64,000 nucleotides of DNA, from contig BDGG01000008.1 of the NCBI GenBank assembly GCA_001949185.1, forward strand, positions 310,001 to 374,000, given 5' to 3'. The position numbers were made by a program, and so were the translations under genes. This document shows, one piece after another, positions 13,542-20,612 of the stretch (position 1 is the first letter of the stretch; each line of letters opens with the position of its first letter). This stretch comes from Ramazzottius varieornatus (lineage: Eukaryota; Animalia; Tardigrada). The notes under the pieces are model-generated. The model was not told the origin of the DNA. It made no database searches and saw nothing but the letters and a program-made list of their open reading frames with translations.

Positions 13542-16500
13542 ATGAACTCACTGCGAGTATGCCAGTCGACCCTGCGAACGAGCGCCCAGTTTGGACGAGG
13601 TAAGAACTTGCCCGCTTACCGTGTGTTCCTTCCTCATAGCAAAATTGTTCCCTGGTTCCTTGTACATCTGGGTAGGACAGTAGAACCCTGAGTTCTCGTG
13701 CTAATTAAATTTACATTACAGGAACCAAACGAGCCCAACATGCCGCAGCCGCCGCTGCACGATCCACGCGTAGTCAGGCACCATCGCTGGTGGAGGGCGA
13801 GCCTGATCAGCCCGTAGTTCGCACTGAGGTTCCAGGACCCAAGTCGAAGGCCTTGACAGCCGACCTGGGAACCATACAGGTATGCCACCATACTGCGATT
13901 TGAAATTGAAAACCTTTTATTTTGCTTGTGAAACCCGTTGCGGTATTGTTTGGCTATAGCATTGTCATGCGAGGCATTATTTTGTTGTCACAGAGTTGAT
14001 TCGCGCCGTCAGCTTTGCTCAGTGGGCATGTGCTGAGGGTAGAACTTGAGGAAATTCTGATTACTTAAGAGGGTCGTTCAAGTAGGCATGCGAACAGCCC
14101 TAAGCTCGAAGAAACCGTGAAGTGAAAATCGATTGAGCACGCGATAAGTCGGAGACCACAGTGTTGGGATTCAGCACGATTGCTGGGTTTCGAGGCATGC
14201 GTTCTATACACGACAAAGGTGGGAAGAAGGCTCAGCTGTGTGCATTCGATCTTTGTTGTGGAAGAGGATGGCGGAAAGCAAGAATAAATTAAAAATAATC
14301 GACGACTTGCTTGTGGGCGTAAACCCACACTTTCGGCTCTTGGCACCTTTGCTTTCGTAACTTCGTACCTTATTTGACAGAATTCCCTGGCAGTGACGTT
14401 CTTCGCGGACTATGAGAAGAGCGTCGGGAACTACATCGCCGACGTTGATGGAAACGTTATGCTGGACACGTACATGCAAATTTCTTCCATTCCTCTAGGT
14501 AGGTCTCTGCAAATCACCAAGCTGAGTCAACTCGGAGGTCCTGTTGCAAGCCAGTAACTAGCCAGGTCTCGAAAAGTTTACTCTATTCAAGACTGTGGTA
14601 ACATATAGAGTGCGAAAAGCAATGATCAATGTGTCTGCTGGATGACTGGGCGAGACAAAGGAACCCTCTGAGCCTGATGGTAAAGCTAACTGACAAACTT
14701 TCCAGGATACAATCATCCGGACTTGCTGGAAGTTACCCAGAGCCGTGAATATCAGGTACTTGACAATATGGAGTCTCTCTTGAGAAAGCTCAGTTGGCAC
14801 TCTGGATTCTTTACTGCTGAGGACCTGACGCTCGCTAATGAGCTGCCTAACTCCTGGTTTCCTCTTTCAGGCTCTTTCTATCAATCGACCCGCCCTTGGG
14901 AACATGCCACCTAAAAGTTTTGTGGACAAGTTGCACGGCGCACTGATGTCGGTAGGTGGACCCAAGTTGACAAACGTAATTACTTTCTGTGAGTACTATA
15001 ACGTCAGAAGTTTTCTCGTAGGTTGCTCCTAGAGGACTAAAGCATGTGCAGACAATGTAGGTGGGATGTCTGAGTACTTTGACCACAAAACCGAGAACGA
15101 TATTGTCAGGCGTGCCTAATGCTGGCTCTACTTTTAGGGCGTGTGGATCGTGCTCAAACGAGAACGCCTACAAAGTCATGTTCATCTGGTATAACGTAAG
15201 TACCACAAGTTTTTTGGACTGTTCTGTCGATAATCGTTGCCCTATAGGTCTTTTCATCGTCTTTCTTTTCCAGATGAAGAACCGACAAGGCAAAGAATAC
15301 ACCATGGAGGAACTCGACCAATGCTTGGTGAACAAGGGACCTGCGTGTCCCGACCTATCGCTGTTGTCGTTTAAGGGCGGCTTCCATGGAAGAACTCTTG
15401 GTACGATACTTCCTCATCGTCCTACGTTTTAGCAGTCTTGCAAATGGTGTCATATCGTATTGGAACTGCAGGATGTTTGGCTACGACCCACACCAAGCAC
15501 GTCCACAAGCGTGACGTCCCTTCGATGGACTGGCCCATAGCCACCTTTCCCAAGTACAAGTACCCACTTGAGCAAAACATGGACTATAACGCCAAGCAAG
15601 ATATGCAGTGTCTGCAAGAAGTGGAGAAGCTCTTCGAGGAGTACAAGGCTAAAGGCCGTCCAGTCGCGGGTATTGTCGTCGAGCCCATCCAGGCCGAGGG
15701 CGGTGACGTCCATGGGTCGCCCGAGTTCTTCCAACAGCTACAGAGAATCGGCAAAAAGGTGATACCATTCGTATGGGATTTCGGCAAACGGACTTGACCA
15801 GATCACTGTCTCAAGCGGCGCACGTTTTCACTGTTACATAGTATTATCTGGTCTTGTGCGCCACTTGGAATAAACTATCTGGTTCAAATGATCTACCGAA
15901 GTCCCACATTACGTACGCATAAGCTTCGCTGTCAGAATTGATCTTTAACGTTGATATTTTCATCTGTTTAGAACGGAGCTGCCCTGCTGATCGATGAGGT
16001 ACAGACGGGTGGAGGATCGACGGGGACAATGTGGGCGCATGAGCAGTTCAAGCTGGACTCCCCTCCGGACATCGTGACATTCAGCAAGAAAATGATGACT
16101 GGAGGATATTTCTACGCCGATGAGTTCCATCTAGCCGAGGTTAGTTAATCACATGACTATAATCGTTACCTCCAAAACTAAACACATCTTTACTGATATC
16201 TTGTTTCGATTAGCCTTATCGTATCTTCAACACATGGTTGGGCGATCCGACGAAAATCATGCTGCTAGAGAAAGCCCTGGGCGTTATCAAGCGAGATAAC
16301 TTGCTGGAGGTGGTGAAGGACTCGGCGTCCGTCATGGAGAAAGGCTTCTTGCACTTGCAGGACAAGTTCCCTAAACTGGTCTCTAACTCGCGTGGACGCG
16401 GCACATTCCGCGCCTTCGACATGCCGGACATGAAGATGCGTGATAAGTTCCTCGGGGACATGCGCAATGCCGGTGTCCAGATTGGTGGTTCGGGCCCCAA

Positions 16501-16594
16501 CTCGGTACGCTTCCGACCGGCACTCATCTTCCAGCCTCACCACGCCGAAACCCTCATCGATATCACGGCCGACGTTTTGAAATCCAAATTCTAA
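13542..16594 (+). CDS. ABAT: 4-aminobutyrate aminotransferase (GABA-T), mitochondrial, ~10 exons
   Basis: [70 protein letters not shown] and the PLP lysine motif DIVTFSKK. Confidence 0.95.
15816..15863. repeat. Dyad element variant (36-nt spacer; ABAT intron)
   Basis: aagCGGCGCacgttttcactg...cttgtGCGCCActt. Confidence 0.7.
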
Positions 16595-17452
16595 ATTCCA
16601 TTCTTTTGTTCCTTTGGAGTCCACATGATAGTATTATGCAACTACCGCACTTTTTGGTTGTTCATAGATACAATTTTACAACTAGAAACTTATCTGAGAC
16701 TATCTTATCAATGTATGAAGAAAGAATAATCCCGTGGGCAAGAACCTTGCTGAGTGTACGGGATACAATACTGGAGACCTCACTCCAGCCTCAACATGCA
16801 ACTTTACGTCTTCTGCGGGCCTGGTATGTATCGTTGCGTAAGGGATGTCGCAATAAGCGATCATGTACAGTTCCGCCCGCACAATGGGGAAGAGTTGAAG
16901 TATCGGTTTACGTGAATATTTCGGTATGCGGGATGATCGAACCAGCTATCATAATTCCTTTAGATCGCATGCCTGTACATGCGACACAAAATTGGTAGTC
17001 AATGAAGAACTCAAGTATAGGCACATCGAACATCAAGGTCCTGTGCACATCTTGGGATCACGATAACTGTAACGTTGTTGCGTCATGCCGCTACCGACGA
17101 CAGGTGGTCGACATAGCGTCGAACCGAACATTCTTTTTATACCATTCTGCTCATTTCCGCATCCTGAGGGCTCATCTGTTGCTTGTTACATCACGATAAA
17201 CTTGACATTGAAACTATCGAAAATAAAGATGACGAAGTCGTATAAATATCGAAACATGACAGTCCACACTTGACGGACTTCTTCCTGGTACAGCTGTCAG
17301 TCAGCTTCTTGCAATATCACCAGAAAACTCCTTATTCAGCCCATCGTTCTACTCAATTTGTCTGACAGTTAACTTTCAGGATTTTGGTACAAGGAACCTC
17401 GTGTTTGTGAGATCTCGCGAATATTCTCCGAGTGATTCTTGAGAGTCAAATC

Positions 17453-18770
17453 ATGTTACCGTTTCACAAGTTTGGGTTTTTCGGGTACCCAGCGACCTTT
17501 TGCATTGTCTTATCCATATTAGGCCTCACCTACCACGCCCAAGGCGAGTGCATTGCTGGTATAAACGCAGTCAGAGAAAGCATTCTGCTAGTAGCACGTA
17601 TTTTGATAGCTTTTTGTCTTGCTCTAGCAGCCAGGATTGATTTCGGAACCGGAAACGATGAAGATGCGGCAAGTGACGGTATGCAAATGGTTCCTGAAAA
17701 ACGACAGGTCAGCAAATTCTTTTGGCATATCTTCTGTACTGCTGTTGTGCCTGCCCCTCCCTTTTCCACACTCGTACATGTTCTTCTTTTTGCAGAACAA
17801 CATGGTAAAAACCTTCAAGACTAAGTTTCCAACTCCTTTGGCGAAGATTTCCCACTCTGATTTTCTGTTCGGCTTGTTTCAGGGCGAGACGGTACGTAAG
17901 AGGAGACAAATACCAACCGGCAAATACTGTAATGCTTCTTCAACTTCGCAAACACGTCACGATACGCGCGGAACATCCCTCCGGGGGTTGGTAAGGCATA
18001 GTCACTGGACCGGGGTTTAACTCCACGCGTACAATCACGTGATTCGAGAAGTTCAAGAAGCATTACAATATTTCACTTGGGTTCAAACCATGAATATTGT
18101 GTTCACATAAATTTGTGGGTTTCTGGTCGTGGTTCCGCTTGATAATTACGCCAACTGGTCGAATGATGCGTTTCCTAGATGGTAAGGATGTCTTCTCTCC
18201 GCAAAGTACATACATTGTTACTCGCAAAACGCGAAGTGTGTTTTCTTATAGGCGTGCCTGGTAAGTAAGAAATGCAATAATGTCGATCTCCCAGCGATTA
18301 ATGGATTATTTTTACTTCGGCAACGAACAGATTAACATCAAGGTATGAAACAGAACCAAGCCGGCTTCGTTTTTCTGAACCTTCGGAAAATTCCCGCCAA
18401 TGCAAATAAGACATGCACAGTCTGATACGTTATTGTTTGTGCTTATGTACAGAACTGCCGCCCGGTAAGGTTCCTGGTTCTCCGCTGAATCACCCGCCCA
18501 TCTTGTTCTAACCCATCCTTTTATTCAAGTTCGAGCGTTCTGCAAAAAGAGGAGGAAAGGTACACGTGATTCAAGGAATGCTATTTCAATAAGCCAGCTG
18601 AAAAGACAAACAAAGCCCATGTTTCTGCATTCTGTTAGAATCGGCGAGTGGAAGAGGAAGTGGACCACGTTTCGACGACGGGCGTGGGACTAGCCAACAG
18701 CTTGTGGCGGGAATGGCTCTTCACACGTCCAGTCATTCCCGCGTCGAACGACCCAATCTACGACAGATAG
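17453..18770 (+). CDS. Micro-exon gene encoding a predicted 128-aa secreted prohormone/neuropeptide-like precursor
   Basis: Exons 17453-17543, 17628-17707, 17796-17804, 17883-17891, 18179-18181, 18252-18260, 18331-18342, 18453-18464, 18530-18559, 18639-18770. Each internal exon lies between AG and GT (first donor is GC) and they join in frame: signal peptide...VPE-KR-QNNMGETMACLINIKNCRPFERSA-KR-GGKNRR...IYDR*. Confidence 0.75.
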
Positions 18771-19592
18771 AAAAGTTGTCCCGAACATCCACGATCTTTC
18801 TATCGAACTGGAAATCTGATCTGAGTAGCACAGACAGTAGATGGCAAGCAGTTTACTTAGGATAAGGCTTTGTGGTACAGTACAGTACCGTCTTTCTCCC
18901 CTAGCTTGCAGCTTTTACTTCTTTATAATTTTCCGCATGTCATCCTTTTATGTATCGCACCTGTCCATTCGTTTTTCAAAACAAAATTCTTCTGCGAAGT
19001 CGCAAGTTGTGAAGAACCTCTCTTCGATCCTCGGACTCTACAGAGCCCAGTGTCAGAACGACAGAACCTGCAAAACAACCAGCTTCGTTCCGTCAGGAAG
19101 TTGAACGAGCATTTACGTCAGAATGGCAGCTCTTCTAAACAGTCGTAACTTACCAGAGTACCTGCAAGTCCTGCAGATGAATACTAAGCTTCAAAGCGTC
19201 TTCCCTAGTTGCCGTTTCATGACTCGGGTTGAGAGAAAATCCCTCGCGTCACGCGTGAACTTGGAATGAAAATGGAGCAAATGAAAACTGGCTTAAACTG
19301 CATGTTTCGCAGCACATGGGCTCGATTGATTTATCAGTTTGCCTCGCTAGGAAGAAAACTCGCAACCAACCCATGTATAACCGCAAACTCCTGATTGGCT
19401 CTATGACAGATGTTTTTACTTTGTGCGAAAATTTAGAAAAATTGATAAACCTCCCTAAATCATCTCGGACAACTGCCATAGAGCTCTGTTGCCCTCTCTT
19501 TGTTCTCCCCCAGCAGGTATATGAGCGTGTGGTTCTTGACGAATGGACCCATAATGCTGGGGTATCAATGAGTGGAACGACTACTGTTGAGA

Positions 19593-20612
19593 ATGGGGAA
19601 TTGCCTTCGACGGGGAGACGGATCCACAGAAGACTATTCTCTCCTTCACGCGAATCCTGCAGATCAAGAGCATCAGAATGACTTAAGACAGCATCATCCT
19701 TCCTCCACGTACAGCCATTCCGTAGGATCGTCGGATACTGCGTCTTCAGACTTTCCGGACGATTTGCACCCTGTAAGTGTCAACATATTAGATACGACCT
19801 CTGTTCTTCCCGTTATTCCTGGCGTATGAGAAACATGAAAGACTATCTCCTTGGGACAGTGCTCGTCGTTCTTTCAGTGGGAAATGTTGGATGGTTATCG
19901 TAGTCTGTGGTTGACAAAAGCCACATAAAGATAGCCTGATTATGTTGCCTCACGCGATTACGTGAACTTCTCTTATATCCGTCGTTGTTTCACCGTTGCA
20001 GGATGAAGTAACGAGTCGATTTGCTTCGCTGATGGTGGATCGCCAAATAACGGAGGAAGAACAGATGCAGAAAGCGCAACGTTTCGGCCTGATCCAGCAC
20101 CTGCCATCCGGTTTGTATGATGGCGGAAAGAAAGACCGAGAGTGAGTAATGAACATCAGCATAAAGTACGCATAAACCTTGAAAGTCTCGTGACTTGCTT
20201 ATCGTCACTCATGTGTCTTTTCGTATCAGGTGCCCCATTTGTATGGTGGAACTAAATTGTGGTGATCCCGTCAGGTTCTTACCCTGTATGCACGTCTATC
20301 ACAAGGTATGCATAATATGTCCTGCTCGTCCAAGAAAAGATAATGCTGGATGAGATCGTTTCCTCAAGTGGCGCACGCTTTCAGCCAGAGACACTGAAAG
20401 AATCCGCCACCTGGGAGAATAAGCTTGGCGAGTTTGTTAATCCACTTAATCGAGCTTCCCTTTATTTGATAATACGAATTTTTCTTTAGGACTGTATTGA
20501 TGATTGGCTCCTAAAGCATTCACTGACTTGCCCCAACTGTATGGAGCCAGTAGAATGCGCGTTGATGAATTCTTACGAAGTTGGGAATACTCCTTGGAAC
20601 TTCACGTCGTAG
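19593..20612 (+). CDS. RNF11: RING-H2 finger protein RNF11-like
   Basis: MGNCLRR myristoylation-type start; ITEEEQMQKAQRFGLIQHLP; CPICMVELNCGDPVRFLPCMHVYHK|DCIDDWLLKHSLTCPNCMEPV; four exons. Confidence 0.92.
20369..20409. repeat. Dyad element N29 (RNF11 intron)
   Basis: aagTGGCGCacgctttcagccagagacactgaaagaatCCGCCAcct. Confidence 0.8.

Follow-up and report, generated by a model that had tools for sequence, protein, structure and literature searches.

The closest described systems to the locus reported here are the micro-exon genes (MEGs) of schistosomes. By definition, the coding region of a MEG is made up mostly of very small symmetric exons, and such genes "appear to be restricted to platyhelminths" (PMC4350168). 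Exon sizes are given as 3-81 bp (PMC10526429; PMC4350168). The neural microexons of bilaterians are described as frame-preserving and as hard to recover for aligners and gene predictors (bioRxiv 10.1101/2020.02.12.945683; PMC8378409). A search of the literature returned nothing linking micro-exons or micro-exon genes with tardigrades. Here we describe a locus of the tardigrade Ramazzottius varieornatus, located in a stretch of 64,000 nucleotides (nt; hereafter the window) that spans positions 310,001 to 374,000 of contig BDGG01000008.1 (assembly GCA_001949185.1), and to which all coordinates refer. According to our analysis, positions 17453 to 18770 probably hold a real, expressed, single-copy protein-coding gene with ten coding exons, six consecutive ones of which measure only 9, 9, 3, 9, 12 and 12 nt, and which encodes the precursor of a secreted disulfide peptide cleaved at dibasic sites. 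The gene model is strongly supported, and a prohormone function is plausible to judge from the translated product.

All exons of the gene lie on the plus strand. Transcription would begin near 17272, since the contigs of four RNA runs begin at 17272-17290, and the 5' untranslated region (UTR; 17272..17452, 181 nt) contains no ATG. The coding part of exon 1 (17453..17543) provides the start codon and a signal-peptide-like N-terminus. It is followed by intron 1 (17544..17630), a GC..AG intron in phase 1 with a tandem TAG|CAG acceptor, and by exon 2 (17631..17707), which encodes an acidic spacer and ends in ..PE-KR-Q. The six micro-exons are AG|AACAACATG|GT at 17796..17804 (9 nt, NNM), which has the best acceptor of the region, AG|GGCGAGACG|GT at 17883..17891 (9 nt, GET), AG|ATG|GT at 18179..18181 (3 nt, Met), AG|GCGTGCCTG|GT at 18252..18260 (9 nt, ACL with the first Cys), whose donor GTAAGT has the top donor score of the region, AG|ATTAACATCAAG|GT at 18331..18342 (12 nt, INIK), and AG|AACTGCCGCCCG|GT at 18453..18464 (12 nt, NCRP with the second Cys). 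A 30-nt exon (18530..18559, FERSA-KR-GGK) and the last coding exon (18639..18770, 132 nt, 43 amino acids (aa)) complete the gene, the latter starting with N-RR and closing with a TAG stop at 18768-18770. No canonical poly(A) signal was found on the plus strand between 18771 and 19300.

The introns measure, in order, 84/87, 88, 78, 287, 70, 70, 110, 65 and 79 nt, and comprise one GC-AG intron (intron 1, G|GCGAGT) and eight GT-AG introns. The seven small exons (9, 9, 3, 9, 12, 12 and 30 nt) are all multiples of three and all start in phase 0, and introns 2-9 are likewise in phase 0. When joined by their coordinates, the exons can be read in one frame without interruption for 127/128 codons, beginning at the first ATG in the transcript. 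A preliminary description of this DNA had already given the positions and flanks of the micro-exon units, which proved exact on re-reading of the sequence, and had stated the symmetry of the small exons and intron lengths of 65-110 nt with one of 287 nt, with which the measured lengths agree. The junction HAQA-ARIDF given there presupposes the GC donor and, of the TAG|CAG pair, the upstream acceptor.

Evidence for splicing comes from RNA contigs of four runs (X1, X2, X3 and X5) from four studies, which were aligned to positions 15700-20400. More broadly, 20 R. varieornatus runs from at least five named studies contain 25-49% of the words of 17380-18900. That the runs represent RNA is apparent from GT..AG joints in the genes on either side, a loose end with poly(A) at 16744 and the absence of any cover over 16956-17269. 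At intron 1, contigs of X1, X2 and X5 join 17541 to 17629 (87 nt skipped) and those of X3 join 17541 to 17626 (84 nt); with a permitted 2-nt shift, these joints read GC..AG, leading from 17543 to 17631 (17543|17631; X1, X2, X5) or to 17628 (X3). Intron 1 is real; its donor is GC, and its two acceptors are separated by 3 nt. At the other end of the small exons, the joint 18557->18637 (with a 2-nt shift, 18559|18639) is present in all four runs. The preliminary description had made its gene model depend on a transcript linking 17707 to 18639, and this link exists, since 17707 is joined to 18529 in all four runs as well, with letters in between that the aligner left unplaced.

The length of these unplaced letters can be determined in record 2 of X1, whose 915 nt are the sum of 2, 270 (17272-17541), 79 (17629-17707), 53 unplaced, 29 (18529-18557), 429 (18637-19065) and a further 53 letters. 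Base 18529 is the G of an acceptor AG and is identical to the last base of micro-exon 6, also a G. Because the 53 unplaced letters are joined by this one ambiguous G, the insert is 54 nt long, which equals 9+9+3+9+12+12. As the aligner placed a piece of 29 nt and would have found any exon of at least ~20 nt, the insert has to be an assembly of several tiny pieces.

Individual micro-exons also left traces in the contigs. Those covering exons 1 and 2 end exactly 10 letters beyond 17707 in record 7 of X2 (341 = 252+79+10), record 12 of X3 (362 = 270+82+10) and record 17 of X5 (357 = 268+79+10). This overrun fits micro-exon 1 (9 nt) plus the G that is common to the retained intron (Gtaaaa) and micro-exon 2 (GGCGAG), and it is at the G after micro-exon 1 that a 31-mer assembly graph would branch between the two. 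Contigs of 288 nt align from 17793 with 17 unplaced letters upstream, which fits the joint 17707|17796 if the 17 letters are 20 of exon 2 minus the CAG that matches the intron end. The joint 18180->18251 (with a 1-nt shift, 18181|18252, GT..AG) was seen directly in X2, X3 and X5, where the contigs concerned retain the introns on either side, and in X1 as the loose end TTCCTAGAT before 18251. It demonstrates both the donor of micro-exon 3 (18181|18182) and the acceptor of micro-exon 4. Since the sole AG within 20 nt upstream of 18181 lies at 18177-18178, micro-exon 3 consists of ATG alone. Partly spliced contigs end at 18558, which fits a 31-mer path merging with a spliced path that ends in ..CG before 18530, as micro-exon 6 does.

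In order to assess how unique the proposed chain is, all chains of AG..GT units totalling 54 nt between 17707 and 18530 were enumerated. Among the 14,137 chains, the six-micro-exon chain ranks first on a generic splice score (29.2 versus 23.5 for the next). Its seven acceptors are within the nine best of 32 candidates and all six of its donors have positive scores. Only four chains have all-positive sites, and among them the six-micro-exon chain alone contains the observed joint 18181|18252. The ten-exon model, with the GC donor of intron 1 and the 3-nt exon as originally proposed, fits both the RNA contigs and this ranking.

Could such a series of AG..GT pairs have arisen by chance, with no gene behind it? 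Micro-exon-like units occur at ~1.5 per kb per strand, and chains of 4-7 units often arise by chance. In 264 kb (the window plus 200 kb of the contig) we counted 34 chains of 4-7 units with lengths that are not multiples of three and 8 chains of symmetric units, while six symmetric units in one chain were encountered at this locus only. With chance chains this common, the pattern by itself is weak to moderate evidence. The gene exceeds chance because RNA contigs of four studies show its joints and the predicted 54 nt: spliced contigs connect 17272 to beyond 18770, and they hold the exact extra length predicted as well as two micro-exon joints that were seen directly. A chance series is thus contradicted by RNA, and we give this explanation next to no weight.

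The product, as translated from the joined exons, has 127/128 aa. Residues 1-31 display a basic n-region, a hydrophobic core of ~19 residues and A-Q-A at positions -3/-1 before the joint of exons 1 and 2, and windowed hydropathy of the N-terminus peaks at ~2.2 (residues 9-27; up to 2.25). By this reading of hydropathy, n-region and A-Q-A, the conventional first exon supplies a signal peptide, as in MEGs. The alternative NAGNAG acceptors of intron 1 make a difference of one Ala, located precisely where the signal peptide is predicted to be cleaved, and their use varies by run, with the extra Ala in X3 and the shorter form in X1, X2 and X5. The signal peptide is followed by the acidic spacer, KR, a 24-aa segment, KR, GGKN, RR and a tail of 40 aa, with the dibasic sites at residues 54-55 (KR), 80-81 (KR) and 86-87 (RR) of the 127-aa form. 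The combination of a signal peptide with basic sites around a short peptide corresponds to the generic description of a prohormone. The 24-aa segment begins with Gln and contains one C-x6-C pair (C-LINIKN-C, from micro-exons 4-6). The micro-exons encode NNM|GET|M|ACL|INIK|NCRP and thereby account for 18 of the 24 residues and both Cys of the KR-flanked segment. The precursor has neither an amidation signal nor an amidation Gly. Translation of the mRNA would yield a pre-pro-protein with this order of parts, which is likely to be secreted and cleaved at its dibasic sites by enzymes of the prohormone-convertase type, thereby releasing a disulfide-looped peptide with N-terminal Gln. The prohormone architecture put forward in the preliminary description can accordingly be read in the translation as far as signal peptide, acidic spacer and dibasic sites are concerned, and its processing stays a prediction.

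No relatives of the gene were found in searches with exons 1-2, the last exon and the DNA. The unspliced open reading frame (ORF) of exons 1-2 found no match among 5.8 billion protein clusters, the last exon found no true homologue among 1.84 billion representatives, and Pfam returned nothing for the last exon. Two proteins that did match the last exon, P0001 (27 near-identical repeats, PKD domains) and P0002, were rejected as homologues because their E-values were inflated by summing over repeats, each of which reached only ~21-33 bits. Within the genome, searches with exon 1, the last exon and the DNA revealed no paralogues, only the transposon in one of the introns being repeated; the gene is single-copy. 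Signs of tandem exon duplication or of an "introner" origin of the array were likewise absent, as the introns are not copies of each other or of a genome-wide element. Rfam gave nothing over 16700-19900, and the ring motif was found in no paper of the literature searched. The protein database includes the annotated R. varieornatus proteome, as RvY_12812 was matched at 96% by a long exon elsewhere in the window, yet nothing in it matches exons 1-2. At least as a protein of 68-215 aa, the range searched, the gene is therefore missing from the annotation, and the expectation that gene predictors would miss it was borne out.

These searches bear on the question whether the product is a peptide precursor at all. 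The transcript could be real and yet specify only a small secreted protein of recent, lineage-restricted origin, or an ORF with hardly any function, with neither dibasic cleavage nor signalling. The lack of homologues in both protein collections and of paralogues in the genome would agree with this, as would the plentiful partly spliced RNAs, the mild dibasic enrichment and the missing amidation signal. It is harder to reconcile with a frame that is maintained across nine introns and eight successive phase-0 boundaries, with an ORF whose start is the first AUG and whose N-terminus is a good likeness of a signal peptide, with expression in runs of at least five studies, and with the location of both Cys within the KR-flanked segment. 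We consider a young or barely functional protein unlikely.

Several observations nevertheless weigh against a peptide-precursor gene as we propose it. The 54 inserted letters are known by length only, and the use of micro-exons 2, 5 and 6 follows from the length sum together with a generic splice matrix that is not trained on tardigrades, under which micro-exon 2 belongs to the top-scoring 54-nt chain and micro-exons 5 and 6 have suitable splice scores. The contigs carry neither strand nor abundance information, and partly spliced forms were assembled in every run; as contig depths are unreliable, we make no quantitative claim on intron retention. Searches with exons 1-2 and the last exon yielded no homologue that could reveal purifying selection, and the coding differences between strains amount to two non-synonymous ones, in the signal peptide, and one synonymous one only. 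Three dibasic sites in ~97 residues represent a mild enrichment only. Secretion, signal cleavage, convertase cleavage, pyroglutamate formation, the disulfide and bioactivity are predictions from the sequence and from general prohormone biology.

For the gene as modelled, we posit a particular order of events during splicing. In genomes with short introns, splice sites pair across introns, and an exon of 3-12 nt cannot hold both neighbouring splicing complexes at once for steric reasons. As adjacent splice sites are only 3-12 nt apart here, removal of the nine short introns is probably sequential rather than simultaneous. The partly spliced contigs include forms from which intron 5 has been removed and introns 4, 6, 7 and 8 are kept. 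They are consistent with a preference for joining ATG and GCGTGCCTG first, to a 12-nt exon.

The preliminary description had further suggested that the symmetric micro-exons might be skipped in combination, giving up to 2^6 in-frame variants and hence a ligand or effector diversified by splicing, in the manner proposed for the MEGs of schistosomes. Since all seven small exons are multiples of three in phase 0, skipping any of them keeps the frame. Two further features of the locus could favour skipping. One is an inverted repeat on the plus strand, of which the first 17-nt arm (17782..17798) spans the polypyrimidine tract and the AG and reaches 3 nt into micro-exon 1, while the second (18537..18553) lies within the 30-nt exon. 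The arms are complementary at 16 of 17 positions, and their duplex of -27.4 kcal/mol is the best pairing in the gene and beats 4,201 sampled window sites. It could form an RNA bridge that loops out the whole array, and its significance is modest. The other is a spliced antisense transcript on the minus strand (approximately 18500..19772, longest ORF 76 aa) that overlaps the 3' end of the gene, namely the last exon, intron 9 and the 30-nt exon. Its introns, read on the minus strand, are 19068-19153 (GTAAGT..TTTTGCAG, four runs) and 18758-18856 (X5 only), an AATAAA lies on the minus strand at 18525, and the antisense RNA was assembled into one contig with the peptide gene.

The contigs themselves speak against combinatorial skipping. 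From 17707 across the array, the sole joint listed leads to 18529 in the four runs of four studies, the full 54-nt insert is present in record 2 of X1, the one contig with summable coordinates, and a skipped form occurs in no contig. The sole alternative event is the choice of the NAGNAG acceptor in intron 1, beside the partly spliced RNAs. The proposed 2^6 variants were thus not recovered, with one mature form only in the contigs of four runs. Because contigs drop rare variants, which could have escaped them, the single form represents absence of evidence rather than disproof, and we regard combinatorial skipping as very unlikely. In a broader form, a MEG-type architecture outside the flatworms would supply the bioactive core of a disulfide-containing secreted peptide, with micro-exon inclusion regulated, for example by the 17-nt RNA bridge or the antisense RNA, such that the locus emits several variants or switches the peptide on and off. 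We offer this as a speculative idea that is rather improbable at present.

The intronic transposon mentioned above resembles a miniature inverted-repeat transposable element (MITE). It occupies ~146 nt (17925..18070) within intron 4, has terminal inverted repeats of ~31 nt and a probable TA target duplication, and is represented in the genome by at least 40 full copies of 79-91% identity on many contigs. Its insertion accounts for the length of intron 4 (287 nt). As RNA, the element folds into a hairpin of -61.6 kcal/mol (z -6.5). Five differences between contigs and genome, all A>G and none of another type, were located in or beside this hairpin (17964, 17994, 18019, 18068 and 18109) in X2, X3 and X5, but not in X1; over the whole aligned stretch, 14 A>G stand against 3 T>C. 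The differences at the MITE could reflect A-to-I editing of the intronic hairpin or single-nucleotide polymorphisms between strains.

The gene is flanked by two others on the plus strand. Upstream, 15061-16744 encodes a class-III aminotransferase that is GABA-transaminase-like by inspection. Its introns 15757-15969 and 16138-16211 were confirmed by RNA, and its poly(A) site is at 16744 in X1, with a longer 3' UTR (to ~16862) in the other runs. Downstream, the gene at 19593-20400+ has an MGNCL.. start, a ..TEEEQ..GLIQHLP.. segment and a RING-H2 domain, and is presumably RNF11. Its introns 19773-20001 and 20142-20229 were likewise confirmed by RNA. An 18-nt length polymorphism was observed near 19432-19452 in other strains.

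The peptide gene exposes a blind spot of annotation: although transcribed and spliced, this gene for a predicted secreted peptide is missing from the proteome published for a model tardigrade. Aligners and gene predictors cannot handle exons as short as its six micro-exons. Catalogues of tardigrade peptides and small secreted proteins may be incomplete, and the same probably holds for those of other animals with short introns. The locus is also an extreme natural substrate for splicing, with a 3-nt exon, six consecutive exons of at most 12 nt, introns of 65-287 nt and assembled intermediates, and it offers a direct test of ordered or sequential splicing under intron definition. As micro-exon chains predicted from sequence are common by chance, such candidates each need RNA support.

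When compared with known systems, the precursor resembles invertebrate prohormones of the allatostatin-C and CCAP types in its signal peptide, acidic spacer, short KR-flanked peptide with N-terminal Gln and one predicted disulfide pair. It differs from them in lacking a family motif and an amidation Gly, in its long C-terminal tail, and in that the mature-peptide region is split by six introns. To our knowledge, six introns within one mature peptide are unusual. Members of the allatostatin-C family have a ring of an aromatic residue followed by Phe-Asn-Pro/Ala-Ile/Val-Ser, and their peptide lies at the C-terminal end of the precursor. The C-x6-C spacing, the Gln after KR and the Asn at ring position 3 could mark the tardigrade gene as an orthologue of these allatostatin-C/somatostatin-type neuropeptides. 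By inspection against this consensus, only the Asn matches, the remaining ring residues, including the aromatic one and Pro-Ile-Ser, are absent, and the peptide sits in the middle of the precursor with 44 residues after it. Of the likeness to allatostatin-C seen earlier, the spacing is therefore present, but kinship finds little backing in one shared Asn and a peptide that is not C-terminal, and we judge orthology to be highly improbable.

The tardigrade micro-exons also share features with bilaterian neural microexons (3-27 nt, dependent on SRRM3/4), which cover the same size range down to 3-nt exons and keep the frame. Neural microexons are mostly single, are alternatively included and occur in conserved proteins, whereas the six consecutive tardigrade ones form most of a small peptide. 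A search of the R. varieornatus genome for SRRM_C (eMIC, PF15230) gave no match, nor did control genomes, the six-frame, exon-by-exon search being weak for such a short low-complexity domain.

The schistosome MEGs remain the nearest parallel. They differ from the tardigrade gene in being ascribed to platyhelminths only (PMC4350168), whereas R. varieornatus is free-living, and in their introns of up to 5 kb, compared with 65-287 nt here. The small exons of the tardigrade gene provide 84 of 381/384 coding nt (~22%), and thus a minor part of the coding region instead of most of it (PMC4350168). The gene is single-copy rather than a member of a family, its contigs in four runs show no alternative exon use, and searches with exons 1-2 and the last exon brought up no sequence similarity to MEGs. 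The tardigrade gene is a real and unusual one with a variant of the known micro-exon architecture, in which no exon shuffling was seen. In common with the schistosome genes, it has a conventional signal-peptide first exon, an unbroken array of very small exons that are multiples of three, a conventional last exon and a product that is predicted to be secreted, and the range of 3-81 bp given for MEG exons accommodates its exon sizes. Symmetric micro-exon arrays in (predicted) secreted proteins are hence not confined to parasitic flatworms, which weakens explanations of such arrays that are tied only to host-parasite conflict.

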